NCBI GenBank assembly: GCA_964019335.1
Contig: OZ025684.1
Span: 1-64,000 of the forward strand
Direction: 5' to 3'
Length of the DNA stretch: 64,000 nt
DNA from: Diplonema japonicum
Lineage: Eukaryota > Protista > Euglenozoa: Diplonemea
In this document: positions 11,825 to 47,666 of the stretch, in pieces
Numbering within the stretch: the first letter of the stretch is position 1
Layout: the number at the start of each line of letters is the position of its first letter
Program-made: the position numbers and the translations under genes
The notes under the pieces: model-generated
What the model was told of the DNA's origin: nothing
Database searches by the model: none
Seen by the model: the letters and a program-made list of their open reading frames with translations, nothing else

Positions 11825-13018
11825 TCAACACAGCGCGCAAAACAGGCATTTATTAGGCTTGCTCAGTACCTTGCGTGTTTTCTCAGGCACCCCGCTACGC
11901 TCCAGAAAGTCGCTTCCGATGTCCGTCATGTCAGTATTCCTCAGGTTGACAACTGTCAATGAAGAACATAAATAAAGAAATTTATCCCCCACTGACCTGA
12001 TCTTGCGCATCTGGCTGAAGTTGACGGAGGTCAGGGACGTGTCGTATGCTAGGAAACGATCCCCGATTGACCTAACCTGCTGAAAAGGCAGGTGTACTGA
12101 TTGCAAGGAACGGCAACATGATAAGAAGTCGAAGCTAATTGCTGTGATGCCTCGCAGGGGGTGCAGATCGATGGCTCGTAAAGAAGAACAGCCTGACATG
12201 AAACCACCTTGCACGCATGATACGTTCTTTAGTGCCGATAGATTCACTTCTACCAAGCTTTCACACCCAAACAAAAACCAAGAGCTAACTTGAGAGATGT
12301 CCCGCAGCGGGGCTAAGTCTATTGTTCGCAAAGAAACACATTGAAAAAGAAATCCCGAGCCAACTGTAGAAACACGCCGCAAAGGTCGAAGGTCTACAGT
12401 TTCGAGCGACTCGCAACAGCCTAGAAACGAAGACCCTATATCGACAACGTCTTTCAAGGGATCCATGTCGATGGTCTCAAGTGAATTACAGTTGTAAAGA
12501 AAATTGTTCCCTATAGAACGCAACCTCAGGGAGGAAAGATTCACGGTGAGTAGGGAAGTGCACCCCGACAAGAATGAATCGCCGACACGGCTCACGCACT
12601 GCTCTTGATCAGTGAACCGCAGGTGCCGAACGTTTAATTGCTTCAAAAACCGTGTGCAGTCGCTCAGCACATCACCAGGAGACACCACCACCTCTAGCTC
12701 TGCGTCCGGCTGATTCCACAGCGATTGTTTGATGTCATCCAGCCGTTCCCCTAGCACCCTCAATGGAACGATCATCGCGTTCGCGGTCCACGTTTCACTA
12801 AAAACCATCACAACTTCGCACCCATGTCCCATCGCAATCTGCTGTATCTCCTGTTTTTCATCATCAAGCACAGCCCCTTCGAACAGCAATCGAAATGTCT
12901 CTTCAACCCCGGCAGCAGAAGCGGCCTTCCCGTACAAGGCCTTTACTGTCTCGCTACCGTTGAGCTCAACCTCGTGCGTAACATTCGCAGGTGTTCTAAT
13001 ACACGCAGTGATGCTCAT
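11825..13018 (-). CDS. Ubiquitin-like domain plus BspA-type leucine-rich repeat protein
   Basis: N-terminal Ubl-like (ETVKAL..FRLLFEGAVLDD); about 10 repeats of xIGxxFLxxCxSLxxVDLxPL. ATG MSITAC at 13018. Confidence 0.85.
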   Translation of the reverse strand: MSITACIRTPANVTHEVELNGSETVKALYGKAASAAGVEETFRLLFEGAVLDDEKQEIQQIAMGHGCEVVMVFSETWTANAMIVPLRVLGERLDDIKQSLWNQPDAELEVVVSPGDVLSDCTRFLKQLNVRHLRFTDQEQCVSRVGDSFLSGCTSLLTVNLSSLRLRSIGNNFLYNCNSLETIDMDPLKDVVDIGSSFLGCCESLETVDLRPLRRVSTVGSGFLFQCVSLRTIDLAPLRDISQVSSWFLFGCESLVEVNLSALKNVSCVQGGFMSGCSSLRAIDLHPLRGITAISFDFLSCCRSLQSVHLPFQQVRSIGDRFLAYDTSLTSVNFSQMRKIRSVGDKFLYLCSSLTVVNLRNTDMTDIGSDFLERSGVPEKTRKVLSKPNKCLFCALC

Positions 13019-13290
13019 GTGTGTTAAGCTGTGCAACTGGGGCCGTGTAAAAAGGTATTTGACCAAAAGGCAAAACAATGGAAATGGTTCTTGATTCCTG
13101 CTTACTGCAACTGCAGTCACGCAAGGTCAGTTGCGAAAGCGACTCCTCTTCTTTTGATTCAGATACGCCTCTTTGGCTCTACCCATGGATTGATGCTGCT
13201 ATTTTGAAAGTATTTCTTAAAGCTTTTCAAAAAAAAAGAAAAGCCGCGGACAAATATAAATTAACTGACCATATGTATGAATAGCAGGTG

Positions 13291-13986
13291 TTAAAAAAAG
13301 CCGACATGCGCACGCAGCAATTGCAGAACTGCGTCATGCCCATTGCGTTCAGCATATGACATAGGGGTCAGACAGCCAGCTTGTATATTCGGATCAGCAT
13401 TGTGCGCCAGCAGTATCCGCACAACGTCAATTCGGTTAGCAGCGGCAGCACGATGCAAAGCAGTGTGGCCACCGTACAACTCACGCTGCGCATTGATGTC
13501 GGCCAAATCCCTCTTGAGGAGAAGGTCCACACATTTTGAGAGACCAGCAACAGCGGCCTCTACAAGCACTTCTGTCATCTGTTCCCTGTCTCGGCACAGA
13601 TCCGCATCGCACATCACTTCTAGCACCTTGAAGTACTTCTCATCTCTTTCCGTCAATTCCTCCGAACTTCTCTTTCCCAAATAACGCAAGTCATGCACAA
13701 GTCCAACTGTCCATTGTCCGGTGTTCCACCCAAACTTTTTCACGAAATACAGCGCTTTGTGTTTATGGCTTACAACTAATTGCAATACACTTTGGTCCGT
13801 AAAAGGGTAGTCGCACACCCTTCTGTCATCTTCCAATTCTTCACCTTCAAATTCAAGTGCAAAAGTATTCATCTCCCAACCCGCTAAGATAATAATTCTG
13901 CTTTTCAAGAATCGTATTGTGTCCTTTCCTAGAGCTGACACGCTCAGTGTGCCGGAGGGCAGCTCAACCTGCAGCGTGACGGACAT
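13291..13986 (-). CDS. Ubiquitin-like domain plus ankyrin repeat protein
   Basis: DTIRFLKSRI..LEFEGEELEDDRRVCDY (Ubl); GHTALHRAA..VVRILLAHNADPN and TPMSYA..GH (ankyrin). Confidence 0.88.
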   Translation of the reverse strand: MSVTLQVELPSGTLSVSALGKDTIRFLKSRIIILAGWEMNTFALEFEGEELEDDRRVCDYPFTDQSVLQLVVSHKHKALYFVKKFGWNTGQWTVGLVHDLRYLGKRSSEELTERDEKYFKVLEVMCDADLCRDREQMTEVLVEAAVAGLSKCVDLLLKRDLADINAQRELYGGHTALHRAAAANRIDVVRILLAHNADPNIQAGCLTPMSYAERNGHDAVLQLLRAHVGFF

Positions 13987-18672: not shown

Positions 18673-18954
18673 TGGCCGAGCGGAGCTTAGTCCCTGTTCT
18701 GGAGGCTCTAGCGGGCTCCAACTAGCTTGTCGGGGTCTGCGACAGATATCTGTTCTGCAACCCTTCGATGCTGCTCATCAGCCTCCTTGCCATATAAAAG
18801 GAAAGAAACGGAAAGGAAAGGATCTTAAGAAAGACAACAGAGTCCTTCAAAGACAAAATGATCAAAGCCAAATGCATAAGAAGGAAAAGAGGAGTGCCGC
18901 GAAGGACACGTATCGCAATGGAGGGATCGGTTCCCTGTTTTAATATTTGAACAC

Positions 18955-21900
18955 TCAGTACGCGGTGACGACGAGGCCTGGGATCTTGAGGACATCCCTT
19001 GATACTGTAACGGGCTCGGGCTTCCTGATCATTCCAAGAATGCTAAGGGTATAGTCTAAGGAGACGATGACTTCTCGGATGCCGTAGTTGAATTCAGGCC
19101 TGCCGCACACGACTACGTGGTTAGACTCGGAGTGTTGCGGAAAGAAGGACTTTACATGGTTGTGCACAACAAGAGGTGCGTGTATGGGCTCGGGTACATC
19201 TTCCGGGTATACAGCGGCCTCCATTTCGTATCCCACCTTTGTGAACAAGTACTGCAGCGAGAACATCTTGTCGTGATTCTTCAAAAGCTGTTCCAGCTCA
19301 TGCGACAGGCCGACTTCTGCAAATGTACCCGCGCACACCAGGAACCAAACTTTCGCCCCATCCGCCAGAGCCGCTCTTGCAAGCGAAAGAAGTGGAACAC
19401 ACCCCGTGCCGCCGCCAATCAGGCACAAATCTTGACCTTTTAAATACTGATGCTCCGACAGCAACAGCCCCCTTCCCTCCACGAAGCTCGATGTGGAAAG
19501 ACTCCCCAGCTCTTTCGCAGAGTGGCTGCCCTCAACAAGACGGATCAAGAACGTCACCTCGTCTCGCTCTTTATCAATCTCCAGAATGCTATACGGGCGC
19601 GACAGCTTTCCATTGAAGCGCAGCGACACATGCGACCCAGGCGGCACGTACTGCTGACCGATACCAAGGATGTGAAACGTGAACTGTGTTGCAGTCGCTG
19701 TTCGTCTGTGTTTCCTGACGAACTTGATCTTCCTGTACTCATCCACAACAAGCGCATCCATCTGCGATGCACTGTCCCTCCCTACTGCAATGCCATCCTT
19801 TGCCATCAGCAGTACCTGCCTTATGGTGGCCATCCATGCATATCGGACCTGTTGGTGTCACATTTGTGAACTATTAGCATACCTGCGGTGTGTACCTGTC
19901 CACCAGCGCCTGTCTGAAGGTTAGATCGAAGGCCTCGCCCATGATATCAAACATGTTTCGCTTGATGCCGTACCTGATGTGTGTCTTGCCTAATTCGTGC
20001 AGAATGTGGGCAACCTCGTGCGACTTTGACAAATCTGTCACTGCCTTGTCGATCGCAGTCATCACCTGCAGACCGTGGTCGTGCAGGCCCTTGCTTTCGT
20101 ACACGTTGCGGTCCCCACCCCAAGGGAAGAGCGCAAGCAGCTCGGGATCGCTCATGAAGATATTTCTGAACAACAACACACCAATTTCCTTCATACCCAC
20201 AGCACGAAGCTCCTTCCACGTATCTCGAACAATGAGCATGTTGCTCTCGTTGGTCGCTAAGTTGTTTGTCTTGAACACGCGCAGAGTCCTCAGGATCTCA
20301 GCAGCATACGTGCTGTGCTCGTGGCCACCCCCCAAACCATGGAAGGCATCTGTGATATCGGTGCCAAAGTGAGGCTTTATGGTCTCGCGCCCCCCAGGGT
20401 GCGAGTGCATGAACGTTGACACGTCATACGCCCACCCCTCCATGTACACCAACTCAGCTGTGGAGCTTCGAGATGCCGCAGTTGTCCGTTTCCAGGCAGC
20501 CTCAAGGTCTTCCTTTGCACCGATCGAATCTTGTGTCTTAATATGTGTTCCGGGCAGGAACTCAGTACGCGTGATTTGCTTCCCCTTTGCCATCACGATG
20601 CGCTTTGCAACTTCGTCGCTAGGGTTGCGCCCCAACACATTCTTCATGAGTGTTACGTCTCCATTCTTTGAGGCCTCATATGCCGCGATGTACCCTGCAT
20701 CGACCCACGTCTTGTCCTCTTGCATCCCGTACAGCAGGTCCCATTTCTCCACCCCCTCTAGGCCTGGCATATACAGCTCATTTACTTCAACGCACGCTTG
20801 TGTGATACCTGCAAAGGGCCACCTGTCAATCGGGCGTAATAATCGTGCCAGAGATGACACGGAGGCCACAAAAGTGCCGGGAACCAAGCAAGGAGCGTTT
20901 AACTGCTCGGCTGCTTCAGCTAAGGCACCTGACAGCTCCACAGGGGAACCAATACACGTAATGAAGTGCTTGTCGTCACCAGTGTGCGTGACACCAAGAA
21001 GCACACCACCACTGGCCATGCCCATATGGATCTTGTAGCTGCCACTGAGCTCCGCAAATACTAGTGCGGCACAGGAAGAGGCTTGGATGGCGTGTTGCTG
21101 GCAGAACCAAACAATTGTGACTGTTGTGGTGGCCACGGAAAGAAGCATCCCGAAGGTGCGCTTAGCTATGTTAGACAGCGAGCGCAACAATGGAGACAAG
21201 AGTTGTGTATTCTGAGTCAATCTCAGCTGGATCACGGTAGCGTTCACGGGTTGCAGCTCTTCAGAAGTCATAAAGCTTTCCAGCGTACTGCGAATGAGCG
21301 AGTCAGACAGTAGCCTGTCGTTGTACATGTCTTTGACGAGAAGCTTAAAGAACGCCGATGACTTGCTGTGCCCGGCACCCCCCGGTGTCGTTGAGAATGG
21401 AATGGACTTCATGGGCGACGGTTGGGAGCTCGATGACCCAGTGTTGGAAGCCTTCTTCTTTGGATTGGCAAGCCCGGTGCCACGATGCGAGATGGCATTT
21501 GGGAGGACACCAGTCAGCGAGACGGTTCCCACACCCTTCAGCACGACAGGGCCTAAGTTGACAAAAGTACAGGCCAACGATTGCGGGGCAGAGATGGATG
21601 AAACGATTTCTTCAGAACAGATAATACACCCCCCCTTGCCTGCGGACTCGATTCGCGCGGCGATATTGACGGTGTGCCCATAATAATCAGACCTGTTGCT
21701 AACAGGGTCCACTTCCACTCCTACAGAGCCAATGTGTACTCCCATGCGCACACGCATCCCACGGAAGATAAGTTGGCCATCCTTCGTTATGGGCGCGCAA
21801 TGGGAATCCAGTAGAATGTCATCCGGCCAGTCAGCGTTCAGAAGAGTTGTCTGCGCTTCCATGCAGAAGTTCAATGCGTTTTCTGCTGATTCAAAAGTGA

Positions 21901-22504
21901 TCATGAACGCGTCGCCTATAGTTTTGACCTCGTACCCGGAGTACTTCTGGTAGCACTGCCGCATCATATTGTTGTGCAGCCTCATAGCAACCTTCATGTC
22001 CTCAGGATGGTCACACCACAAGTTTGAGGACGCTTCAATGTCAGTGAAAACGAAAGTAACCTTGCCCGTTGGCGCAGGGACGGAAGCTCCAAACGTGAGG
22101 ATAGGTGCGGAAGGTATGGAAAGCGAGGACGCAGAGCGTGCTTCAGGGAGTAGATCACTGGGCTCGTCGGCTTCCGGTAGCTCAGGTTCCGGCTTGTAAG
22201 AATCTGCAGTGAGATACCTTCGCTTTAAATTCGCAAATTCTTCGAAGGTATCAAATCTCTGCGGTCTTTTGAATTGTGCTGAAACGCCATGCATGGTGCC
22301 ACTTACCATGTACAAGTCTTTCAGAGGAGCGGAGATGTATACTCTCACCCCTTGTAATATACAAATGGAAAACAACAAAGACACAGCCACCCCCACAGCA
22401 CCTCCGATGGCAGCACCCCCCACGTGCCCTACCCCCGCTGTTGCACCACATGTCAACAAGCATGACAAGAAACAGGACAGAAATCCTGCAAGAGGTACAT
22501 CCAT
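18955..22504 (-). CDS. Two-exon gene (19883-22504 and 18955-19848), 1171 aa: TM, class III adenylate cyclase, degenerate cyclase, cytochrome b5, globin, FAD/NAD(P)H-binding reductase
   Basis: Cyclase: FVFTDIEASS, YEVKTIGDAFM, RVRMGVH, DYYGHTVNIAARIE. b5: YDVSTFMHSHPGG..GTDITDAF..HS. Globin: DPELLALF, HG(E7), LGKTH(F8). Reductase: RPYS, GGGTGCVP, VCG. Splicing restores the globin H helix YTPQ|VRYAW in frame. Confidence 0.88.
19849..19882 (-). other. Predicted 34-nt GT-AG intron
   Basis: CAG|GTATGCTAATAGTTCACAAATGTGACACCAACAG|GTC. It contains the in-frame stop, and removing it joins both ORFs in frame. Confidence 0.85.
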
Positions 22505-22713
22505 TGTAAATCTGTAGTGAACTCAAGCAAAAAAGAAGCAGGGGAGAGAAAAAAGGAGGAGGGAAAGCAAAGAAGATATCGACTTCGGCAGAAAAATAAC
22601 ATGCCTAATGAGTTCGAAAGATCGCAAGTTAGAAAACTGCAAACGATGATGATGTAAAGGAAGGCGTAATGGTATGTACAGCTAGCAATACAGAAGTGCA
22701 AAAAAAAGCAAGA

Positions 22714-24126
22714 TCAAGCTTTACACGAATTCTTGATCACAAAGGGTTCGGCACTGACAGCCTCGCTAATAAAATAATACAAGTTGCCGAACAAAAGGCA
22801 TGAACCGATGCTCAGAGAGACAGCTGAGATCACCGCTTGCTTAGAGTACATGTCGTTATCGATGGTAAAGTAGAGGATTACAGGAAAGATGAAGCTGGTT
22901 GCAGGAGCTAGCACGCCGCCTGAAAATACCATAAGGTGATATAGGTAAGACGATGGCAGGAAAGTGACGAGTACAAAAATCAACATGAACAACACCGGCA
23001 TATACTTTCCAATATCATGGTGGGGGCTAAATGCTGTGACAATACTTGAGATCGCGCTCTTCAGCGCCAAGGCCTCCGTGGGCAGCGTAAGCAATAGCTT
23101 AACCGCCACGAAGCACTTTGAAATGTTCCCTACTTCGTCAGTTACAGAAAACCCCAAGAGAAAGTTTGGCTTCACGCAGTCAGCAAACAGCACCATACCG
23201 AGTGCTCCTACCACCGCACTCATAGATGCTGCCACTGTACCACTAAAGGCCACTCTCCCCCACATCGATGGCTCTCTCATATTGTTTCTAATTAAAAATA
23301 CAATGCTCTGTGATGTCACAGCATGCATAGCCAACCCACCAGATCTGAACAATCTCGTTGCAAGACCTTCTGAAGAACGGCGCAGAAGCACCTGGTCTTG
23401 CCCCCCTCGAATGGAGAGGTGAACCAACAGAATGAGTGTAACACCTGCGCACAGCAGACCCATTGCAGCAAGCCACCCGAACCCTTCTATGTTCGTCGGC
23501 AGCGAAAGTGGCACTGCCAGCATCATGCCAAGCATAGGTGTTATAACACTCCGTTTGAAAAAGTCGCTTTGTGTCCAGTGTTGCACAACAGGAGGTAAGA
23601 TGGAAGCCACAACGAGCATGTCAAGGGTAATAATGGAAATGGAGTGCAGTACCAGAAGGACTGCGGATCCGATCCTTGCGGGTAACCCTAGTGTCCTGTT
23701 TGCCATTTCGGGGAACGTCATGTAGCCTGTTTCCTTGCCGAGGCGGATCATCATGCGGTTGGATGCAACTGATAAGAGGCAAAACACCAAAAGAAAGGCG
23801 CAACCGCATATAGGACCCACCTCGTTGATCATGAATGGAATGCCTACGATACCGGAGCCGAGGGTGGCATTGAGAAGGTGCCCTACGGAAGTCCAATACC
23901 CGCCGCTCCCCATGGGCATGTCCTTGGTGAGGGACTTCAGAGATCTCAATGAGTCCGTCTCGTCCTTGTCTTCTTCGTAGAGTACGGCTACACCGAAGCC
24001 ATGGTCCGACAGCACGCTGCTCCTCCTGTGGTACGCGTCCCCCGTGATGTCTATGTCCTGGTCATGGTCATGTTCGGACCCGTCGTCGTTGCTGTCTTTC
24101 CAATCTTCGTGCAAACAGAACATCAA
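22714..24126 (-). CDS. Amino acid permease, AAAP/SLC38-like
   Basis: HLLNATLGSGIVGIPF motif, about 11 hydrophobic helices, SFIFP near the C-terminus, acidic N-terminal tail. Confidence 0.88.
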   Translation of the reverse strand: MMFCLHEDWKDSNDDGSEHDHDQDIDITGDAYHRRSSVLSDHGFGVAVLYEEDKDETDSLRSLKSLTKDMPMGSGGYWTSVGHLLNATLGSGIVGIPFMINEVGPICGCAFLLVFCLLSVASNRMMIRLGKETGYMTFPEMANRTLGLPARIGSAVLLVLHSISIITLDMLVVASILPPVVQHWTQSDFFKRSVITPMLGMMLAVPLSLPTNIEGFGWLAAMGLLCAGVTLILLVHLSIRGGQDQVLLRRSSEGLATRLFRSGGLAMHAVTSQSIVFLIRNNMREPSMWGRVAFSGTVAASMSAVVGALGMVLFADCVKPNFLLGFSVTDEVGNISKCFVAVKLLLTLPTEALALKSAISSIVTAFSPHHDIGKYMPVLFMLIFVLVTFLPSSYLYHLMVFSGGVLAPATSFIFPVILYFTIDNDMYSKQAVISAVSLSIGSCLLFGNLYYFISEAVSAEPFVIKNSCKA

Positions 24127-29800: not shown

Positions 29801-32800
29801 CTATTGTTTGCTCTTCTTGCAGATTGCGATGAAGACCTGTTCGAGGGAAGTCTCGCTGATGGAGTAGTCGATGATCTTGAGGGGGTCGCGCGCCTTCTGG
29901 ATCGTGGAGAACATCTGCGACAGCTTCTGCCCTGCGGTGAGCTGGTAGGTGAGACGGTGGTTGGTCTGTTCCACCAGAGTCGAGTTCGGGAAGCTCGTTT
30001 CGAAAAACCTCACCACCTCTTCCTCCTTCGACGGGGTCACCTTCACCTCCACCTCGTAGGCCCCTCCGAACTTGTGCTTCAGGTGGGAGAGGGATCCGAG
30101 GCACTGGAGCCTCCCGTCTACCATGATCGCCGTGCGGTGGGCCAGGGCCTCTACCTCCTCCAAGTGGTGGGTCGTGAGGACCACGCACCTCCCCTTCCCG
30201 ATAGACTGAAGCGCTGTCCACATTCCTCTCCTCGCCACAGGGTCCATCCCGGCGGTGGGCTCGTCCAGCAGGATGCACGACGGGCCCCCGATCAGGGAGA
30301 TCGCGATGCTCGTCTTCCGCTTGTTGCCCCCGGACAGCCTCTTGCACACCGTGTTCCTGTGGTCCTGAAGCCCCAGCACCCTGATCAGCCCTTCCGTCAT
30401 CTCCTCTCGCATTCCCATCGGGACCCCACGCAACGCGGCGTACAGCGAGATGTGCTCCAACGGCGTCAGCAGGTCCAGCAGAGCGTCGAACTGCGGGCAG
30501 TACCCAAGCTCCCTCTTCGCCTCAGCCGCTTCCATCACCACGTCGTAGCCCTTGATGGAGGCACACCCGGAGGTCGGGAGGAAGTTCCCGGCCAAGACCT
30601 CGATCGTGGTCGTCTTCCCCGCCCCGTTCGTCCCCAGGAAAGCAAAGATCTCGTCCGTCTTCACCCCGAAAGTCACGTCCTTCACCGCCACCTTCGGAGG
30701 AACAGACGGGTACACCTTTCGAAGCTGCTGCACCTTCACCACATCCCCCGCCCTCCCCTGAAGCACTGCGCTCCTCTCGGCCGCAACGTCCTCGTCCTCC
30801 TCCGCAGCCCGCATCTCCATCGCGATGTCGCTGTCGGGACCGGGGGGCTTCCTCAGGCGGAGGATGTACCAGATCTGAGGGAAGTCGTGGGCCATCGCAA
30901 GCACTGCGAACACTGGGAACATCAAACACAGGAACAAGATGTCCCACCCAACCACATCCATCGACAAGGGGGTGTTTGTGGTGGTGCCTATCTTACGCTT
31001 ATTAGGAAGCTGAGCAAGAGCCAAGATCCCATCACCCAAGCAGAAGGAGGGGATCACACGGAACACGAAACGGAGGGCCTTCGCCACATCTTTTGTTGAC
31101 GAGATGATTTCCAAAATGCTAACAGTCATGACGAGGGCGAACCCAGAGAAGTAGTTTCCAAGAAGAACAGTGTTCTGGCCGGTGGTTGCACTCGAGAAGT
31201 AGAATGATGCCAAATACGAAGCAAAGATGGCAGCCACACCGTAGAAGAAAAACAGCATCAATGTTGCTATGAAAGCCTCACCCCCCACGTACTCGTCACG
31301 CCCGAACATGAGGAAGATAATCATAGCAAGAGTGGAGCTCACAGTGAAGCAAGTCAGATCCCAGCAGAAGTTGGACAGCCAGTAGGCACTGAGCTTCACA
31401 CCAGAAACAACCTGAACGTGCTTCGATTTGCTCACACGCTCCTTCACCAAGAATGCTACGTAGTTCGCAGGAATGAAACAGAACGGGAGCATGATGAACA
31501 CCGCCGTCAGCGTTGCTGTCATTGTTGCAGTTTGATCTTCGTGAAAGACACTGTACGGCAGGGGACTGTTCACAAGCTTGATACCTCTTGTGCTCTTGCT
31601 AGTCTGCTTCAAACGTGTTGAGGCGAAGCCGTTCATGGCAATGGGAAGGCTGTGCATGCTGCTTGTGTTGTGGAACAGTGTCATCGGGGAAGAGAAGTCC
31701 GCAGCCGGCTGGAACAGTGCCTGCCAGCACCTGTCGACCTCATTGGATCGGTGCAGGAGCCAGTTGCTCATGTTCGCAGGATTGTCAAATGTATCAGGCC
31801 TGGGGCTCACTCCTTCGATCATGTTGCTCACAGCAAAAGGACTGCCCACAGGTGCCACAGGGAAGATTGAGTTCTCGTCATATTCCACGAGATCAATGGG
31901 ACTGAGGGATGAACTTCCAATCAGATTCTTCAGTGTTAAAGCATACATCACAACCACAACAGGAAGGATAAGCTGGAAGCAGACTGTGCACCTGTCACGC
32001 TTGCTGTACTGAAGCCTCTTCCTCAACAACCCGTGCCATTGAGACATGTACAGAACCTTGTCCTGCATCCTGTCCGCCGGGTCCATGTCGATCCCCTCGA
32101 GATGTTTCACTTCTTGTCCCGATGCATGCTGCTGCTGTTCCTGATGATGGTCGTCCTCAGCCTCGTGGTCGTGTGCAATCTTGATGAAGATCTCTTCCAA
32201 GGTGGTCACGCTCATCCCGAAGGTCTTCACCCCGAGCTGCTGCCCGGCCGACTCCAGCTGTTCGAACAGGTGCGCGAAGTTTGGAAGCCCCCACATCGGG
32301 ACCCTGTATGCAAGCTCCGAACCAGCCGACGAAAGAAGTTCCACATCCTGTTCGCCGGTCTTCCTCAGGGGGCCCACCTGGTCCTTGATGGTGCGCGTGA
32401 TGTTGTCGATGCTCGCCCCTGGTGCCAGCTCCATCGTGAGGTTGTAGCCGACACCAAGTTTCTGCTTCAGGAAGAATGACGATCCCCAGCAGTTCACACG
32501 CCCGCCGTGCAGGATCGCGATCGAGTCACCCAGCAGGTCCGCCTCGTCCATGAAGTGTGTCGTCAGCAAGATGGTCCGTCCAGCCCTCACAGTCTTCAGA
32601 AGGTCCCAGATCGCACGCCTCGCCTGCACATCCATCCCAGCTGTTGGTTCGTCCAAGATGATGAACCTCGGTCCCCCCATCAGAGCGATCCCTACGCTGA
32701 GCTTTCGCTTCATCCCACCAGACAACGATGCCGAGTAAACGTCCTTCTTGTCACTGAGCTCGACCTTCGCCAGAATATCGTCCACGTGCTCTTCGATCGT

Positions 32801-34855
32801 GTCCATCGGGATCCCCTTCACACGACCGTAGTAACGAAGGTGCTCCGCACATGTCATGTTGTCCCACAGGATGTTGTGCTGCGGGCACAACCCGATGTCG
32901 CGTCTCACCTCCCCGAGGTTGTGGGCGATGGAGTTCCCGTACACGCTGGCATCACCGGAAGTCACAGGAAGCATCCCCGTCAACATGTTGATGAGCGTCG
33001 TCTTCCCAGCCCCGTTGTGCCCCAGCAGTGCCAGAATCTGGCCCTCGTACAGCGACAGGTTCACGTTGTTCACCGCCACGTTCGTCGTCCCCTCGTTGTC
33101 GAACTCTTTCCGCAGGTTCGTTATCGAGATCCGCTTCTTCTCCAGCAGGGATGGGTCAGTGATGCTCTCAAGGTTCTTCTTGTCGAACACACCGTCCACC
33201 GCATCAGTGTCAAGGTTCTTGAACTCCACGGGTTTGAACCAGTACGAAGGCCAGCAGTAGTAACACCAAGGCTTCTTTGCACCCCACTCACTGGGAAGAA
33301 CTTGGTCCAGCCACACAGCCAGGAGGAGGTACAGGAAGGTGTCGATCCACATAAATCCGAGGGACAGGGAGAAAGAATACGAGCCATCAGTTGCGGTGCT
33401 CCAGGTCAAGGGGACCCCCTTCCCAGCAGCCTCGTACACAAGCGTCACTGCCTGCCCGAAGGCATAAGTGTTGAAGAAGGAAAGGGTCACTTGCGTGGAT
33501 GTCGATGACTTTGTGAGCACCAGCGAGGGAATAGCTGTCACAAGGTACACCATGGGGCTCACAAGACTCGCCAGAGAAGCCTTCGAGAAAAACACAGACA
33601 TCATGATGCCAGCTGCCGCCAAGGACATGCAGTAGCTCCAGAACAGCATGAAGATGATCCCAAAGTTTGTCCCGCTCAAGAAGGTCCAGCTCACTATAAG
33701 TGCAAGGAGGAGCCCTGTGATCGACATTTGCACTATTGTTGTCATCACCCAAGACAGCTTGAAGGCCGTGGAGGACAGCCCCATGATGAGCATCGCCTCT
33801 CGGATCCGCGCCTCCTTCTCGCGAACAATGGAAGACACAATCTGAGACAAAGGGAACAGGAAGGCCATTGTGAGCAAAAGGGGGAGAAACGATCCAGCGC
33901 TTTTCAAAAAGCTGTTCGAATGGTACCCTTGCACAGGCATCGGGACGATGGCGGAGGGGACCTCAGCCCCAGTGATGTTGGCATTGATGAGGCTCTGAAG
34001 GGTGAGGAAGCCACCACCAATATACTGACGGTAGGTCGTGTCGTAGCCAATGTTTTCAGCGGTGTGAGCGGAGGTGTCAGGAACAGCTGTGTAGTTCATC
34101 CTGATGGTGTACTCAGTGAGACTATTCAAGACGATAACAGCCCATATCTTGCTGGACCCCTCCTTTGACGATGCGTAGTCAGTCGCCGCTTTCTCACTCT
34201 TGAAACTCCTCTTCGTGTACTTGTAGGTGTGCGTGTTGGTCAAAAACCAATCGTCGAACCTCTCCACAAGGGCAGGCTCCCCCATGATGCTGATGTTCCC
34301 CCCAGTGCGCAGCGCGTTCGCGACCCCAGTGCCACTGTCATCTGTCCCAGGGAGATCCACAGTCTGTGCGAAGTTCCTCCACAGGGCCACAACGTCGAAG
34401 CTGGGAATCGTGGTGGAGTTGCGAACCTCGAACCAAGGCATCAGTATCTCGTCAAGTATGCCCTCATCGTTGTTGTCGGGAACCGAAGTTCCGAGGCAGA
34501 GGTTCCCCAAGCAGTGCCACTCGGGAGGGGTGTCCGTACAGGTGGCGTACCCCATGGGCTCAGCCTGACCGTCGAGACGGCACATCCATGGCTTGAAGTG
34601 CGCATCCACATCGAAGTGGTTCTCGAGGTACTCAAAGTTCTTGTGGTTGTCGGAGCCCGCTGCATAGTACGCAGGCACCATCATCGTCATGAAGAGCACA
34701 GGAAGCAGAATCTCCAACAGTGTACCCTTCCACGATCGCAGCTTCAACCGCACGTTCTTCTCCATCACGAAGTAAACCGCTGCCAGCACATTGGGCCTCT
34801 CGAACTCCCCAACTCTGACGCCGTTGAGCATCGGGGTGAGGAGGTTTGCCTCCAT
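29801..34855 (-). CDS. ABCA-family full transporter, copy 1
   Basis: VREKEARIREAMLIMGL; NBD1 GHNGAGKTT, LSGGMKRK, LDEPTAG; NBD2 GTNGAGKTT, GYCPQFD, LSGGNKRK; SLEQVF. Confidence 0.96.
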   Translation of the reverse strand: MEANLLTPMLNGVRVGEFERPNVLAAVYFVMEKNVRLKLRSWKGTLLEILLPVLFMTMMVPAYYAAGSDNHKNFEYLENHFDVDAHFKPWMCRLDGQAEPMGYATCTDTPPEWHCLGNLCLGTSVPDNNDEGILDEILMPWFEVRNSTTIPSFDVVALWRNFAQTVDLPGTDDSGTGVANALRTGGNISIMGEPALVERFDDWFLTNTHTYKYTKRSFKSEKAATDYASSKEGSSKIWAVIVLNSLTEYTIRMNYTAVPDTSAHTAENIGYDTTYRQYIGGGFLTLQSLINANITGAEVPSAIVPMPVQGYHSNSFLKSAGSFLPLLLTMAFLFPLSQIVSSIVREKEARIREAMLIMGLSSTAFKLSWVMTTIVQMSITGLLLALIVSWTFLSGTNFGIIFMLFWSYCMSLAAAGIMMSVFFSKASLASLVSPMVYLVTAIPSLVLTKSSTSTQVTLSFFNTYAFGQAVTLVYEAAGKGVPLTWSTATDGSYSFSLSLGFMWIDTFLYLLLAVWLDQVLPSEWGAKKPWCYYCWPSYWFKPVEFKNLDTDAVDGVFDKKNLESITDPSLLEKKRISITNLRKEFDNEGTTNVAVNNVNLSLYEGQILALLGHNGAGKTTLINMLTGMLPVTSGDASVYGNSIAHNLGEVRRDIGLCPQHNILWDNMTCAEHLRYYGRVKGIPMDTIEEHVDDILAKVELSDKKDVYSASLSGGMKRKLSVGIALMGGPRFIILDEPTAGMDVQARRAIWDLLKTVRAGRTILLTTHFMDEADLLGDSIAILHGGRVNCWGSSFFLKQKLGVGYNLTMELAPGASIDNITRTIKDQVGPLRKTGEQDVELLSSAGSELAYRVPMWGLPNFAHLFEQLESAGQQLGVKTFGMSVTTLEEIFIKIAHDHEAEDDHHQEQQQHASGQEVKHLEGIDMDPADRMQDKVLYMSQWHGLLRKRLQYSKRDRCTVCFQLILPVVVVMYALTLKNLIGSSSLSPIDLVEYDENSIFPVAPVGSPFAVSNMIEGVSPRPDTFDNPANMSNWLLHRSNEVDRCWQALFQPAADFSSPMTLFHNTSSMHSLPIAMNGFASTRLKQTSKSTRGIKLVNSPLPYSVFHEDQTATMTATLTAVFIMLPFCFIPANYVAFLVKERVSKSKHVQVVSGVKLSAYWLSNFCWDLTCFTVSSTLAMIIFLMFGRDEYVGGEAFIATLMLFFFYGVAAIFASYLASFYFSSATTGQNTVLLGNYFSGFALVMTVSILEIISSTKDVAKALRFVFRVIPSFCLGDGILALAQLPNKRKIGTTTNTPLSMDVVGWDILFLCLMFPVFAVLAMAHDFPQIWYILRLRKPPGPDSDIAMEMRAAEEDEDVAAERSAVLQGRAGDVVKVQQLRKVYPSVPPKVAVKDVTFGVKTDEIFAFLGTNGAGKTTTIEVLAGNFLPTSGCASIKGYDVVMEAAEAKRELGYCPQFDALLDLLTPLEHISLYAALRGVPMGMREEMTEGLIRVLGLQDHRNTVCKRLSGGNKRKTSIAISLIGGPSCILLDEPTAGMDPVARRGMWTALQSIGKGRCVVLTTHHLEEVEALAHRTAIMVDGRLQCLGSLSHLKHKFGGAYEVEVKVTPSKEEEVVRFFETSFPNSTLVEQTNHRLTYQLTAGQKLSQMFSTIQKARDPLKIIDYSISETSLEQVFIAICKKSKQ

Positions 34856-35756: not shown

Positions 35757-38700
35757 CTACTCAGCAAGGCTCTTCTTGCAGATTGCGATGAAGACCTGTT
35801 CGAGGGAAGTCTCGCTGATGGAGTAGTCGATGATCTTGAGGGGGTCGCGCGCCTTCTGGATCGTGGAGAACATCTGCGACAGCTTCTGCCCTGCGGTGAG
35901 CTGGTAGGTGAGACGGTGGTTGGTCTGTTCCACCAGAGTCGAGTTCGGGAAGCTCGTTTCGAAAAACCTCACCACCTCTTCCTCCTTCGACGGGGTCACC
36001 TTCACCTCCACCTCGTAGGCCCCTCCGAACTTGTGCTTCAGGTGGGAGAGGGATCCGAGGCACTGGAGCCTCCCGTCTACCATGATCGCCGTGCGGTGGG
36101 CCAGGGCCTCTACCTCCTCCAAGTGGTGGGTCGTGAGGACCACGCACCTCCCCTTCCCGATAGACTGAAGCGCTGTCCACATTCCTCTCCTCGCCACAGG
36201 GTCCATCCCGGCGGTGGGCTCGTCCAGCAGGATGCACGACGGGCCCCCGATCAGGGAGATCGCGATGCTCGTCTTCCGCTTGTTGCCCCCGGACAGCCTC
36301 TTGCACACCGTGTTCCTGTGGTCCTGAAGCCCCAGCACCCTGATCAGCCCTTCCGTCATCTCCTCTCGCATTCCCATCGGGACCCCACGCAACGCGGCGT
36401 ACAGCGAGATGTGCTCCAACGGCGTCAGCAGGTCCAGCAGAGCGTCGAACTGCGGGCAGTACCCAAGCTCCCTCTTCGCCTCAGCCGCTTCCATCACCAC
36501 GTCGTAGCCCTTGATGGAGGCACACCCGGAGGTCGGGAGGAAGTTCCCGGCCAAGACCTCGATCGTGGTCGTCTTCCCCGCCCCGTTCGTCCCCAGGAAA
36601 GCAAAGATCTCGTCCGTCTTCACCCCGAAAGTCACGTCCTTCACCGCCACCTTCGGAGGAACAGACGGGTACACCTTTCGAAGCTGCTGCACCTTCACCA
36701 CATCCCCCGCCCTCCCCTGAAGCACTGCGCTCCTCTCGGCCGCAACGTCCTCGTCCTCCTCCGCAGCCCGCATCTCCATCGCGATGTCGCTGTCGGGACC
36801 GGGGGGCTTCCTCAGGCGGAGGATGTACCAGATCTGAGGGAAGTCGTGGGCCATCGCAAGCACTGCGAACACTGGGAACATCAAACACAGGAACAAGATG
36901 TCCCACCCAACCACATCCATCGACAAGGGGGTGTTTGTGGTTGCACCAATGTCTCGTTGTTGTGGAAGTTGAGCAAGAGCCAAGATCCCATCACCCAAGC
37001 AGAAGGAGGGGATCACACGGAACACGAAACGGAGGGCCTTCGCCACATCTTTTGTTGACGAGATGATTTCCAAAATGCTAACAGTAATGACGAGGGCGAA
37101 CCCAGAGAAGTAGTTTCCAAGAAGAACAGTGTTCTGGCCGGTGGTTGCACTCAAGAAGTAGAATGATGCCAAATATGAAGCAAAGATGGCAGTCACACCG
37201 TAGAAGAAGAACAGCAACAGCGTAGCGAAGAAGGCCTCGCCGCTCCCCACGTACTCGTCACGCCCGAACATGAGGAAGACAATAATAGCAAGAGTGGAGC
37301 TCACAGTGAAGGAAGTCAAGTCCCAGCAGAAGTTGGACAGCCAGTAGGCACTGAGCTTCACACCAGAAACAACCTGAACGTGCTTCGATTTGCTCACACG
37401 CTCCTTCACCAAGAATGCTACGTAGTTCGCAGGAATGAAACAGAAGGGAAGCATGATGAACATTGCCGTTATTGTCGCTGAAATCGTTTCAGTTTGATCT
37501 TCGTGATAGGCACTGTACGGCAGGGGGTTGTTCACAAGCTTGATACCCTCCGTGCTTCCGTGCTGCTGCCTGTACTGCTCCGAGGCGAAGCCGTTCATGG
37601 CAATGGGAAGGCTGTGCATGCTGCTTGTGTTGTGGAACAGTGTCATCGGGGAAGAGAAGTCCGCAGCCGGCTGGATCAGTGCCTGCCAGCACCTGTCGTC
37701 CTCATTAGATCGGTGCAGGAGCCAGTTGCTCATGTTCGCAGGATTGTCAAATGTATCAGGCCTGGGGCTCACCCCTTCGATCATGTTGCTCACAGCAAAA
37801 GGGCTGCCCACAGGTGCCACAGGGAAGATTGAATCCTCACTGTACTTGAAGAGGTCGATCGCCTTCAAAGAGGTGCTTCCAAACAAATCACTCAGAATTA
37901 ATGCATACATCACAACCACAACAGGAAGGATAAGCTGGAAGCAGACTGTGCACCTGTCACGCTTGCTGTACTGAAGCCTCTTCCTCAACAACCCGTGCCA
38001 TTGAGACATGTACAGAACCTTGTCCTGCATCCTGTCCGCCGGGTCCATGTCGATCCCCTCGAGATGTTTCACTTCTTGTCCCGATGCATGCTGCTGCTGT
38101 TCCTGATGATGGTCGTCCTCAGCCTCGTGGTCGTGTGCAATCTTGATGAAGATCTCTTCCAAGGTGGTCACGCTCATCCCGAAGGTCTTCACCCCGAGCT
38201 GCTGCCCGGCCGACTCCAGCTGTTCGAACAGGTGCGCGAAGTTTGGAAGCCCCCACATCGGGACCCTGTATGCAAGCTCCGAACCAGCCGACGAAAGAAG
38301 TTCCACATCCTGTTCGCCGGTCTTCCTCAGGGGGCCCACCTGGTCCTTGATGGTGCGCGTGATGTTGTCGATGCTCGCCCCTGGTGCCAGCTCCATCGTG
38401 AGGTTGTAGCCGACACCAAGTTTCTGCTTCAGGAAGAATGACGATCCCCAGCAGTTCACACGCCCGCCGTGCAGGATCGCGATCGAGTCACCCAGCAGGT
38501 CCGCCTCGTCCATGAAGTGTGTCGTCAGCAAGATGGTCCGTCCAGCCCTCACAGTCTTCAGAAGGTCCCAGATCGCACGCCTCGCCTGCACATCCATCCC
38601 AGCTGTTGGTTCGTCCAAGATGATGAACCTCGGTCCCCCCATCAGAGCGATCCCTACGCTGAGCTTTCGCTTCATCCCACCAGACAACGATGCCGAGTAA

Positions 38701-40853
38701 ACGTCCTTCTTGTCACTGAGCTCGACCTTCGCCAGAATATCGTCCACGTGCTCTTCGATCGTGTCCATCGGGATCCCCTTCACACGACCGTAGTAACGAA
38801 GGTGCTCCGCACATGTCATGTTGTCCCACAGGATGTTGTGCTGCGGGCACAACCCGATGTCGCGTCTCACCTCCCCGAGGTTGTGGGCGATGGAGTTCCC
38901 GTACACGCTGGCATCACCGGAAGTCACAGGAAGCATCCCCGTCAACATGTTGATGAGCGTCGTCTTCCCAGCCCCGTTGTGCCCCAGCAGTGCCAGAATC
39001 TGGCCCTCGTACAGCGACAGGTTCACGTTGTTCACCGCCACGTTCGTCGTCCCCTCGTTGTCGAACTCTTTCCGCAGGTTCGTTATCGAGATCCGCTTCT
39101 TCTCCAGCAGGGATGGGTCAGTGATGCTCTCAAGGTTCTTCTTGTCGAACACACCGTCCACCGCATCACCCGTGTCCAAATTCGTGAATTCCTTCTTCTG
39201 GAACCAGTACGAAGGCCAGCAGTAGTAGAAAAAAGGCTTCTTCGCACCCCACTCACTGGGAAGAACCTGATCCAGCCACACAGCCAGGAGAAGGTACAGG
39301 AAGGTGTCGATCCACATAAATCCGAGGGACAGGGAGTAGGAATACGAGCCATCAGTTGCGGTGCTCCAGGTCAAGGGGACCCCCTTCCCAGCAGCCTCGT
39401 ACACAAGCGTCACTGCCTGCCCGAAGGCATAAGTGTTGAAGAATGACAGGGTCACTTGCGTCGTTGTCGATGAGTTCGTGAGCACCAGCGAGGGAATAGC
39501 TGTCACAAGGTACACCATGGGGCTCACAAGACTCGCCAGAGAAGCCTTCGAGAAAAACACAGACATCATGATGCCAGCCGCCGCCAAGGACATGCAGTAG
39601 CTCCAGAACAGCATGAAGGTGATCCCAAATTCAGTATTGTCGAGAAAGGTCCAGCTCACCACAAGTGCAAGGAGGAGCCCTGTGATCGACATTTGCACTA
39701 TTGTTGTCATCACCCAAGACAGCTTGAAGGCCGTGGAGGACAGCCCCATGATGAGCATCGCCTCTCGGATCCGCGCCTCCTTCTCGCGAACAATGGAAGA
39801 CACAATCTGAGACAAAGGGAACAAAAATGCTAAAGTAAGAACAAGGGGGAGAAACGATCCAGCGTTTTTCAAGAAGCCGTTCGAATGGTACCCTTGCACA
39901 GGCATCGGGACGATGGCGGAGGGGGCCTCAGCCCCAGTGATGTTGGCATTGATGAGGCTCTGAAGGGTGAGGAAGCCACCACCAATGTACTGACGGTAAC
40001 TCTTGTCGTAGCCAATGTCTTCAGCGGTGTGAGCGGAGGTGTCAGGAACAGCTGTGTAGTTCATCCTGATGGTGTACTCAGTGAGACTATTCAAGACGAT
40101 AACAGCCCATATCTTGCTGGACCCCTCCCTTGACGATGCGTAGTCAGTCGCTGCTTTCTCACTCTCGAAACTCCTCTTCGTGTACTTGTAGGTGTGCGTG
40201 TTGGTCAAAAACCAATCGTCGAACCTCTCCACAAGGGCAGGCTCCCCCATGATGCTGATGTTCCCCCCAGTGCGCAGCGCGTTCGCAACATTCACACCAT
40301 TGTCATCTGTCCCAGGGAGATCCACAGTCTGTGCGAAGTTCCTCCACAGGGCCACAACGTCGAAGCTGGGAATCGTGGTGGAGTTGAAAACGTGGTACCA
40401 AGGGGAGAGGAGCTCCTCGAGGGCACCGTTGTCGTTGTTGTCGGGAACAGAAGAGTTCAGGCAGAGGTTCCCCAAGCAGTGCCACTCGGGAGGGGGATCG
40501 CTCGAATTAGGATCGCTCGAATTCACACAGAGGGCGTACCCCATGGGCCCAGTCTGCTCATCGAGACGGCACATCCATGGCTTGAAGTGCGCATCCACAT
40601 CGAAGTGGTTTTCAAGGTACTCTTGATTCTTGTAGTTGTCGGAGCCCGCTGCATAGTACGCAGGCACCAGCATCGTCATGAAGAGCACAGGAAGCAGAAT
40701 CTCAACGGTGGTACCCTTCCATGCTCGAATCTTTAAGCGAGCGTTCTTCTCCATCACGAAGTAAACCGCTGCCAGCACATTGGGCCTCTCGAACTCCCCA
40801 ACTCTGACGCCTGCATGCGTCGGGTTGAGGCGACTCGTTTCAGTCGCAAGCAT
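35757..40853 (-). CDS. ABCA-family full transporter, copy 2
   Basis: Same motifs as copy 1. ATG MLATET at 40853 follows a pyrimidine-rich tract ending in CACAG. Confidence 0.95.
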   Translation of the reverse strand: MLATETSRLNPTHAGVRVGEFERPNVLAAVYFVMEKNARLKIRAWKGTTVEILLPVLFMTMLVPAYYAAGSDNYKNQEYLENHFDVDAHFKPWMCRLDEQTGPMGYALCVNSSDPNSSDPPPEWHCLGNLCLNSSVPDNNDNGALEELLSPWYHVFNSTTIPSFDVVALWRNFAQTVDLPGTDDNGVNVANALRTGGNISIMGEPALVERFDDWFLTNTHTYKYTKRSFESEKAATDYASSREGSSKIWAVIVLNSLTEYTIRMNYTAVPDTSAHTAEDIGYDKSYRQYIGGGFLTLQSLINANITGAEAPSAIVPMPVQGYHSNGFLKNAGSFLPLVLTLAFLFPLSQIVSSIVREKEARIREAMLIMGLSSTAFKLSWVMTTIVQMSITGLLLALVVSWTFLDNTEFGITFMLFWSYCMSLAAAGIMMSVFFSKASLASLVSPMVYLVTAIPSLVLTNSSTTTQVTLSFFNTYAFGQAVTLVYEAAGKGVPLTWSTATDGSYSYSLSLGFMWIDTFLYLLLAVWLDQVLPSEWGAKKPFFYYCWPSYWFQKKEFTNLDTGDAVDGVFDKKNLESITDPSLLEKKRISITNLRKEFDNEGTTNVAVNNVNLSLYEGQILALLGHNGAGKTTLINMLTGMLPVTSGDASVYGNSIAHNLGEVRRDIGLCPQHNILWDNMTCAEHLRYYGRVKGIPMDTIEEHVDDILAKVELSDKKDVYSASLSGGMKRKLSVGIALMGGPRFIILDEPTAGMDVQARRAIWDLLKTVRAGRTILLTTHFMDEADLLGDSIAILHGGRVNCWGSSFFLKQKLGVGYNLTMELAPGASIDNITRTIKDQVGPLRKTGEQDVELLSSAGSELAYRVPMWGLPNFAHLFEQLESAGQQLGVKTFGMSVTTLEEIFIKIAHDHEAEDDHHQEQQQHASGQEVKHLEGIDMDPADRMQDKVLYMSQWHGLLRKRLQYSKRDRCTVCFQLILPVVVVMYALILSDLFGSTSLKAIDLFKYSEDSIFPVAPVGSPFAVSNMIEGVSPRPDTFDNPANMSNWLLHRSNEDDRCWQALIQPAADFSSPMTLFHNTSSMHSLPIAMNGFASEQYRQQHGSTEGIKLVNNPLPYSAYHEDQTETISATITAMFIMLPFCFIPANYVAFLVKERVSKSKHVQVVSGVKLSAYWLSNFCWDLTSFTVSSTLAIIVFLMFGRDEYVGSGEAFFATLLLFFFYGVTAIFASYLASFYFLSATTGQNTVLLGNYFSGFALVITVSILEIISSTKDVAKALRFVFRVIPSFCLGDGILALAQLPQQRDIGATTNTPLSMDVVGWDILFLCLMFPVFAVLAMAHDFPQIWYILRLRKPPGPDSDIAMEMRAAEEDEDVAAERSAVLQGRAGDVVKVQQLRKVYPSVPPKVAVKDVTFGVKTDEIFAFLGTNGAGKTTTIEVLAGNFLPTSGCASIKGYDVVMEAAEAKRELGYCPQFDALLDLLTPLEHISLYAALRGVPMGMREEMTEGLIRVLGLQDHRNTVCKRLSGGNKRKTSIAISLIGGPSCILLDEPTAGMDPVARRGMWTALQSIGKGRCVVLTTHHLEEVEALAHRTAIMVDGRLQCLGSLSHLKHKFGGAYEVEVKVTPSKEEEVVRFFETSFPNSTLVEQTNHRLTYQLTAGQKLSQMFSTIQKARDPLKIIDYSISETSLEQVFIAICKKSLAE

Positions 40854-40965
40854 TTGTTTAAGCTGTGAGATGTGAAAACAAACGAAGATGCGGGAAATAA
40901 AACTAAAAGACAAACTATTCTAACCCTTGAAAGACCAGAGCTGATTTATCAGACTTTGAAAAAAA

Positions 40966-47507: not shown

Positions 47508-47666
47508 CGGGGTCAATGGATTCGCTTTGGTCGAAATTTTAATGTTTTAACTGTGTGGAATGGTGGGAGGTTAGAGACTTGTTCTACTATATAATAAGGT
47601 TTCAGAGAAGGAGCGCAGCACGAACTGTAAAGATCGTGCTGGATAATAATATTGATACATGGGGTG

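Follow-up and report, generated by a model that had tools for sequence, protein, structure and literature searches.

Do two neighboring open reading frames (ORFs) on the minus strand of a Diplonema japonicum contig encode two proteins, or is one protein of unusual composition hidden in them? The DNA in question, called the window here, is a stretch of 64,000 nucleotides (nt) from contig OZ025684.1 of assembly GCA_964019335.1 (positions 1 to 64,000), and all positions below refer to it. ORF1 (19874-22504, minus strand) has 876 amino acids (aa), and ORF2 (18955-19833, minus strand) has 292 aa and lies in another frame. The original prediction, made from the letters of the DNA, was that a 34-nt intron separates them and that its removal gives a single membrane-anchored chain of 1171 aa, with two adenylate cyclase domains, a cytochrome b5, a globin, and a flavin reductase. 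Our analysis confirmed that the locus is one expressed gene, from which the 34-nt intron is spliced out to give the 1171-aa product. The coordinates of its features are collected in Table 1.

The in-frame TAA of ORF1 and a TGA that closes the frame of ORF2 upstream both fall within the same 34 nt (19849-19882), so a one-base insertion, deletion, or frameshift cannot join the two ORFs, but excision of the 34 nt joins them in phase 0. On the minus strand, the junction reads CAG/GTATGC...AACAG/GTC (slashes mark the splice points), and the joined product takes 874 residues from exon 1 (19883-22504) and 297 from exon 2 (18958-19848). In published D. japonicum data, 98% of the introns are GT-AG, the median length is 41 nt, the 5′ site is G/GTATG, the 3′ site is CAG, and the 3′ part is unusually A-rich (PMC12621601). 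The 34-nt element, which has a CTAAT branch-like motif in its interior and an A-rich 3′ part, fits this consensus on all counts. Since the host is a diplonemid and not a trypanosomatid, an intron of 34 nt is normal here rather than exceptional (PMC12621601).

To see the junction in independent data, four public sequencing runs were compared over positions 18700-22800. One of them, run X6 from a separate study, contains a 3808-nt contig which reads 22451-19881 and then 19846-18700 (“skips 34, CT..AC (cut +2)”), and this means that exactly 19849-19882 was removed, while the contig otherwise had 0 differences from the window. The three other runs are DNA-like; they retained the 34 nt and also had 0 differences from the window. 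A single-base frameshift or an assembly error was thus excluded by the stops of both frames within the 34 nt and by three concordant DNA-like runs. X6 does not contain the intergenic positions 22452-22561, as expected of an RNA assembly, and the contig of the neighboring gene stops at 22562.

Exon 1 and exon 2 were searched separately, and uninterrupted paralogues and an orthologue stand in for the full chain. The searched D. japonicum assembly has 62.5 Mb (a genome of strain YPF1604 has been published, PMC13598402), and it contains four paralogues that are uninterrupted ORFs of 1131-1179 aa. In these, the residues on the two sides of the exon junction map consecutively (856/857, 864/865, 860/861, and 849/850), and their DNA is colinear at a CA(A/G)/GT(G/C) codon boundary where the intron is absent. 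The orthologue from D. ambulator, a transcript-derived ORF of 1186 aa with 71% identity to the window gene in exon 1 and 64% in exon 2, runs continuously through YTPQVRYAW and has the same C-terminal motif at its end. So the predicted effect of removing the 34 nt, which was to restore globin helix H (YTPQ/VRYAW) and to bring the reductase into frame, was borne out, and the exact skip in X6, the four intron-free paralogues, and the continuous D. ambulator ORF together establish the single 1171-aa chain. The translation of exon 1 is stop-free and colinear from its first Met with the four paralogues and the orthologue, and exon 2 aligns over its full length to residues 881-1186 of the orthologue, the same C-terminus included.

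At the 5′ end, the transcript of the D. ambulator orthologue begins at the equivalent Met, and a hydrophobic N-terminus is common to the paralogues and the orthologue. By hydropathy only, residues 1-59 would be a membrane anchor. We found no spliced-leader letters on the spliced contig of X6, which begins at 22451, and the RNA contigs leave the intergenic positions named above uncovered; a candidate spliced-leader acceptor region lies there, directly upstream of the ATG, and also extends beyond them (Table 1).

The nearest solved structure of the first cyclase-homology domain is the catalytic domain of Trypanosoma brucei GRESAG4.1 (1fx2; expect value (E) 2e-33). Alignment with 1fx2 identified D155 (in FTDIE), K194 and D198 (in KTIGDA), and D273, N280, and R284 (in DYYGHTVNIAARIES), which means that the two metal Asp residues, the Lys/Asp pair for adenine, and the transition-state Asn and Arg are all present, and they are invariant in the family. 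The catalytic set had been predicted as two metal-binding Asp, an ATP-specifying Lys/Asp pair, and NxAAR, and each part of it was found. Judged by these residues, domain 1 is predicted to be a trypanosome-type class III adenylate cyclase that is catalytically complete.

The second cyclase domain had been predicted to be degenerate. A Pfam search of residues 376-608 at E up to 10 gave no match, and a comparison of the two cyclase domains by hhalign reached an E of only 0.38, so the relationship is visible by fold search only. An AlphaFold2 model of residues 376-655 was built on a 30-sequence family alignment and had a predicted local distance difference test score (pLDDT) of 87.9 and a predicted template modeling score (pTM) of 0.87. 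Foldseek matched it with probability 1.0 to the class III cyclases CyaC, CyaB, Rv1625c, and bPAC (E 5e-10 to 1e-8, template modeling score up to 0.72), with RhGC also among the matches, at 12-19% identity. None of the metal-Asp, KxxGD, DxxG..V, and NxxxR motifs searched for in domain 2 was present, and by the strand register of the model the metal Asp and Asn/Arg positions would be occupied by other residues. Domain 2 is therefore best modeled as a catalytically dead cyclase fold, and the predicted degenerate cyclase is real as a fold, although Pfam is blind to it. If domain 1 paired with domain 2, the active site would be incomplete, and activity should therefore need two chains that pair their first domains.

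The genome has more than 45 further adenylate cyclase genes (G000 loci L007-L030), several of them in tandem arrays, such as those at G000:C21:193756-223708, C37:444288-456790, and C50:411994-429974. In all of them the active domain is followed by the same degenerate fold, and a tandem of active and dead cyclase in so many genes suggests that euglenozoan cyclases follow a general principle of regulation.

The C-terminal part carries the haem and flavin domains. The cytochrome b5 has HPGG at 702 (His 702) and two candidates for the second axial His, H728 and H730; its matches in the PDB are at about 1e-6, and its histidines are invariant in the family alignment. For the globin, the nearest solved structures are neuroglobins (E 7e-10), and the phmmer alignment to human neuroglobin 1oj6 gave Phe at B10, F793 as Phe CD1, H810 as His E7, and H842 as His F8, while helix H runs about 20 codons into exon 2 (19783-19848). 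The reductase is nearest to the NADH-cytochrome b5 reductase of Physarum (2eix, E 4e-8), and its motifs are in register with 2eix: RPYS (RxYS) at residue 84 of exon 2, GSHS (GxxS), GGGTGCVP (GGTGxxP) with GGGTGC at 145, and CGRPEF (CGxP) with CGRP at 248. All the motifs that had been claimed for these three domains were recovered by the alignments, namely HPGG and a second His in the b5, CD1 Phe and the E7 and F8 His in the globin, and RxYS, GGTG, and CG in the reductase. The haem ligands and the catalytic residues do not vary among the six family members compared.

The b5-globin-reductase module was modeled from the uninterrupted paralogue L002, and the reductase was well modeled, the globin fairly, and the b5 poorly. 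By sequence and model, the module appears to reproduce the domain order of flavohaemoglobin with parts that are not those of flavohaemoglobin. The order of globin, flavin adenine dinucleotide (FAD) domain, and NAD domain is as in flavohaemoglobin, so direct transfer from FAD to globin and an NO dioxygenase activity are live alternatives, and the b5 may be a side branch or else the actual signaling haem.

How widely is this architecture found? A b5-globin-reductase profile was searched against 1.84 billion representatives, and the globin was joined to the reductase in only 3 of them (D. japonicum, D. ambulator, and D. papillatum KAJ9472313.1) and in one ENA fragment; the same search found a Sulcionema protein with cyclase and b5 in which the reductase was not recognizable. 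By these matches the family appears to be restricted to diplonemids. The database relatives EP01064_P004910 (D. japonicum), EP01059_P023899 (D. ambulator), and KAJ9472313.1 have the same six-part architecture at 33-71% identity, but they are uninterrupted ORFs or transcripts, whereas the window copy has an intron. Over 1163 residues, one paralogue ORF matches EukProt EP01064_Diplonema_japonicum_P004910 with 100% identity, KAJ9472313.1 is annotated only as “Adenylate cyclase,” and relatives of the protein sit in public databases with their architecture unremarked. The prediction had called the architecture one not known to be described, and this agreed with our full-text literature searches, which found no paper describing a cyclase-b5-globin-reductase architecture; the nearest were trypanosomatid globin-cyclases. 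The protein is thus undescribed in the searchable literature, and it is a variant of known haem-coupled cyclases.

In a maximum-likelihood tree, the window gene was sister to the D. ambulator protein (100/100), then came the paralogue L003, next two further japonicum/ambulator pairs, and the D. papillatum homologue was outside all of them. At least three paralogue lineages are older than the split of D. japonicum and D. ambulator, and their retention argues for function. The genome also has L006 (G000:C6:142755-147947), a distant paralogue of 915 aa with 33% identity, which combines cyclase, b5, and globin, lacks a reductase domain, and is a natural “minus-reductase” control for the mechanism proposed below. 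In L027 (G000:C42:493456-497838) and L019 (G000:C38:414738-419108), cytochrome b561 and/or b5 is N-terminal to the cyclase, which is a distinct haem-cyclase fusion. Since other cyclases of the genome have b5 or b561-b5 modules, haem-to-cyclase coupling recurs in this genome.

The tree also bears on the intron. Only one of the five D. japonicum copies, the window copy, carries it, so a gain on the branch of the window gene is most parsimonious, and the 34-nt intron was probably gained there recently. Two possible sources of its sequence were rejected. A genome search that allowed up to 3 mismatches found the 34-mer at this one place, and its similarity to the flanking exon, which tandem duplication would have copied, was no higher than in shuffled controls, so the intron stems neither from a mobile introner nor from duplication of its flanks. 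The locus is therefore a clean case of probable recent intron gain at CAG/GT, with intron-free sister copies as controls.

What would such a protein do? It is probably a sensor of O2, NO, or redox state, and we regard it as somewhat probable that it is a haem-flavin adenylate cyclase which turns O2, NO, and reducing power into a cyclic AMP (cAMP) signal at the membrane. With the dead second domain as partner no active site would be complete, so two chains would pair their first cyclase domains for cAMP synthesis, and the C-terminal haem-flavin module would determine which state one haem or both are in. NAD(P)H would reduce the FAD, which would reduce the haems directly, as in flavohaemoglobin, or via the b5; the globin haem would then be re-oxidized or ligated by O2, NO, or an oxidant. 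The conformational change that follows would travel via b5 and pseudo-cyclase, reach the catalytic dimer, and alter the cAMP output. The path from NADH through reductase and b5 to globin is one possible electron route among several readings; according to references listed in PMC7475203, the system of b5, b5 reductase, and NADH reduces hexacoordinate globins. A more far-reaching version, which we offer tentatively, is that of a self-powered coincidence detector. In this version, NAD(P)H would poise the hexacoordinate globin and the b5 through the protein’s own flavin, the cAMP output would depend jointly on O2/NO and reducing power, and the dead fold would switch the pairing of the catalytic domains; the whole would have been assembled independently of flavohaemoglobins and HemAC and expanded to five copies in a heterotroph of the sea that encounters oxygen gradients. 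If true, it would be the first signaling enzyme known with a complete NADH-to-haem electron-transfer chain.

Two other functions have to be weighed against a haem-flavin cyclase that senses gas and reducing power. The C-terminal globin-FAD-NAD part might be mainly an enzyme, an analogue of flavohaemoglobin for NO dioxygenation or nitrite reduction, with the cyclase reporting on its turnover or co-localizing with it. The shared order of globin, FAD_binding_6, and NAD_binding_1 speaks for this, and so do a linker of only about 12 residues from helix H to the FAD domain and the top Foldseek matches of the L002 module, which were flavohaemoglobins over about 410 columns. But these matches had a root-mean-square deviation of about 16 Å, so the order alone is common and the geometry is not, and the best rigid matches were b5 reductases. 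At B10 and E7 the globin has Phe and His where flavohaemoglobins have Tyr and Gln, its nearest sequences are neuroglobins, the PDB sequence matches of the reductase were NADH-cytochrome b5 reductases only, and a pure detoxifier would not require that two cyclase domains and a b5 be kept in every copy; we consider this rather unlikely. The protein might otherwise sense reducing power or an external oxidant and not gas, with NAD(P)H/NAD(P)+ setting the redox state of FAD and b5, the b5 signaling, and the globin serving as electron sink or relay. This would agree with the b5 lying directly C-terminal of the pseudo-cyclase, with the b5 or b561-b5 cyclases L019 and L027 that have no globin, and with L006 and the Sulcionema homologue, which have no recognizable reductase; the invariant ligand-binding residues of the globin suggest, however, that ligand chemistry matters, and we hold this explanation to be improbable.

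As to the gene itself, one could still read the locus as two genes, or as a gene broken by a 34-bp insertion, with a cyclase-b5-globin protein ending at the TAA and an independent or dead reductase ORF. The frames are indeed interrupted in the DNA, and six codons past the junction ORF2 offers an ATG of its own. Yet canonical D. japonicum splice signals mark the 34 nt, which are precisely missing from a 0-difference contig without intergenic DNA, exon 2 is conserved to its final residue with the orthologue, and truncation at the TAA would cut globin helix H. Because the spliced contig, the intron-free paralogues, and the continuous orthologue agree, both the two-gene and the pseudogene readings are very unlikely, and we give them hardly any credence. 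Several points nevertheless weigh against the one-chain haem-flavin cyclase as set out here. X6, the source of the spliced contig, carries no RNA label, which also favors the two-gene reading, and we infer its RNA nature. Its contig begins at 22451, which is 53 nt 3′ of the ATG (22504), so inclusion of the anchor is a prediction. In the reductase, the window copy and the D. ambulator orthologue have RGL in place of RGP and CGRP or CGTP in place of CGPP. The model of the L002 module had a pLDDT of 75, a pTM of 0.54, and a pLDDT below 50 in its b5 part; inter-haem and FAD-haem distances, which an AlphaFold model had been expected to provide, could not be taken from it, as its geometry is not usable. 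And as to function, a sensor of haem state, redox, or gas that drives cAMP is a plausible and conserved reading at which we arrive entirely by inference.

Haem-based gas sensors normally rely on separate cellular reductases for their ferrous, ligand-competent state. If a cyclase brought along its own chain from NAD(P)H over flavin to haem, a single recombinant protein would be enough to test directly how redox metabolism, O2/NO, and cAMP are linked. In abundance and diversity, diplonemids rank among the foremost heterotrophic protists of the sea; they inhabit oxygen gradients, and to our knowledge their signaling is essentially unstudied.

Table 1 Features of the haem-flavin cyclase gene in the window (all on the minus strand; slashes mark splice points)
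Feature	Position	Strand	Description
Candidate spliced-leader acceptor region	22512..22575	-	Polypyrimidine tract, then AGs at 22522-22523 and 22512-22513, directly upstream of ATG; putative, from sequence only
Exon 1	19883..22504	-	874 codons, ATG to ...YTPQ; anchor, cyclase, pseudo-cyclase, cytochrome b5, most of globin
N-terminal hydrophobic anchor (putative)	22328..22504	-	Residues 1-59, one or two membrane segments; Kyte-Doolittle 19-aa windows up to 2.39
Cyclase-homology domain 1	21524..22072	-	Residues 145-327; Pfam Guanylate_cyc PF00211, 7e-27; full catalytic set
Cyclase-homology domain 2, degenerate	20705..21379	-	About residues 376-600, helical linker before; by AlphaFold2 and Foldseek
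Cytochrome b5	20276..20452	-	Residues 685-743; Pfam Cyt-b5 PF00173, 5e-11; HPGG and H728/H730
Globin	19883..20173	-	Residues 778-874; Pfam PF00042 (778-867), 2e-9
Intron	19849..19882	-	34-nt spliceosomal, phase 0; G/GTATGC 5′ site, CAG/ 3′ site, GT-AG
Exon 2	18955..19848	-	297 codons and stop; end of globin helix H, short linker, FAD/NAD(P)H reductase
FAD- and NAD(P)H-binding reductase	19048..19755	-	Exon 2 residues 32-267; Pfam FAD_binding_6 PF00970, NAD_binding_1 PF00175

The long ORFs of the window are all on one strand, an arrangement that suggests a kinetoplastid, but this origin was rejected since the paralogue ORF named above is fully identical to a D. japonicum EukProt protein. An Rfam search of the window found no RNA family. 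Directly upstream of the cyclase gene lies an Aa_trans amino-acid transporter (22714-24126), and further away a GH125 alpha-mannosidase (49181-50623), and neither can be readily connected with the function of the cyclase. At 29801-34855, 35757-40913, and 42468-47516 lie three ORFs in tandem, each of about 1700 aa, and the first of them is an ABCA-type transporter (two ABC_tran, ABC2_membrane_3, and an ABCA1 R1 domain). Two adjacent small genes (11825-13120 and 13291-13986) each begin with a ubiquitin domain, which is joined in one to BspA-type leucine-rich repeats and in the other to ankyrin repeats.

Among known systems, the trypanosomatid HemAC-Lm/OAC proteins (e.g., LmjF.28.0090) likewise have a euglenozoan class III cyclase and a globin in one chain, and O2-dependent cAMP signaling has been reported for the Leishmania globin-cyclase (PMC7719234). 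Leishmania HemAC/OAC has an N-terminal globin, a C-terminal cyclase, and no b5 or reductase (PMC7719234), just as the original prediction had stated in calling it a globin-coupled cyclase without redox modules. The order is thus reversed, since the globin of the window protein is C-terminal to both cyclase domains, and the OACs are cytosolic, without b5, flavin reductase, or a reported second cyclase fold. OACs have been described as a trypanosomatid innovation absent from Bodo (PMC7719234), so the diplonemid fusion is probably independent. The closest catalytic domain is that of the T. brucei receptor-type cyclases GRESAG4 (1fx2, 1fx4), which share the lineage-specific insertion region and are membrane-attached; but GRESAG4 has a large extracellular sensor N-terminal to one transmembrane helix, whereas the sensor candidates of the window protein would be cytosolic and C-terminal. 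Flavohaemoglobins (Hmp/Yhb1; 1gvh, 1cqx, 4g1v) have the same order of globin, FAD_binding_6, and NAD_binding_1 in one chain, but the window protein differs from them in its neuroglobin-like globin (Phe B10, His E7), its b5-reductase-like reductase, and its additional b5 and two cyclase domains, and flavohaemoglobins were absent from the PDB sequence matches at E<0.01 for the globin part and the reductase part. The system of NADH-cytochrome b5 reductase, cytochrome b5, and hexacoordinate globin has the same three redox components, there as separate proteins, and Ncb5or, whose b5R domain (6mv1) was among the best reductase matches, is a b5-CS-b5R fusion without globin. In the window protein, by contrast, all of these components are fused, with the globin between b5 and reductase, and coupled to a cyclase.

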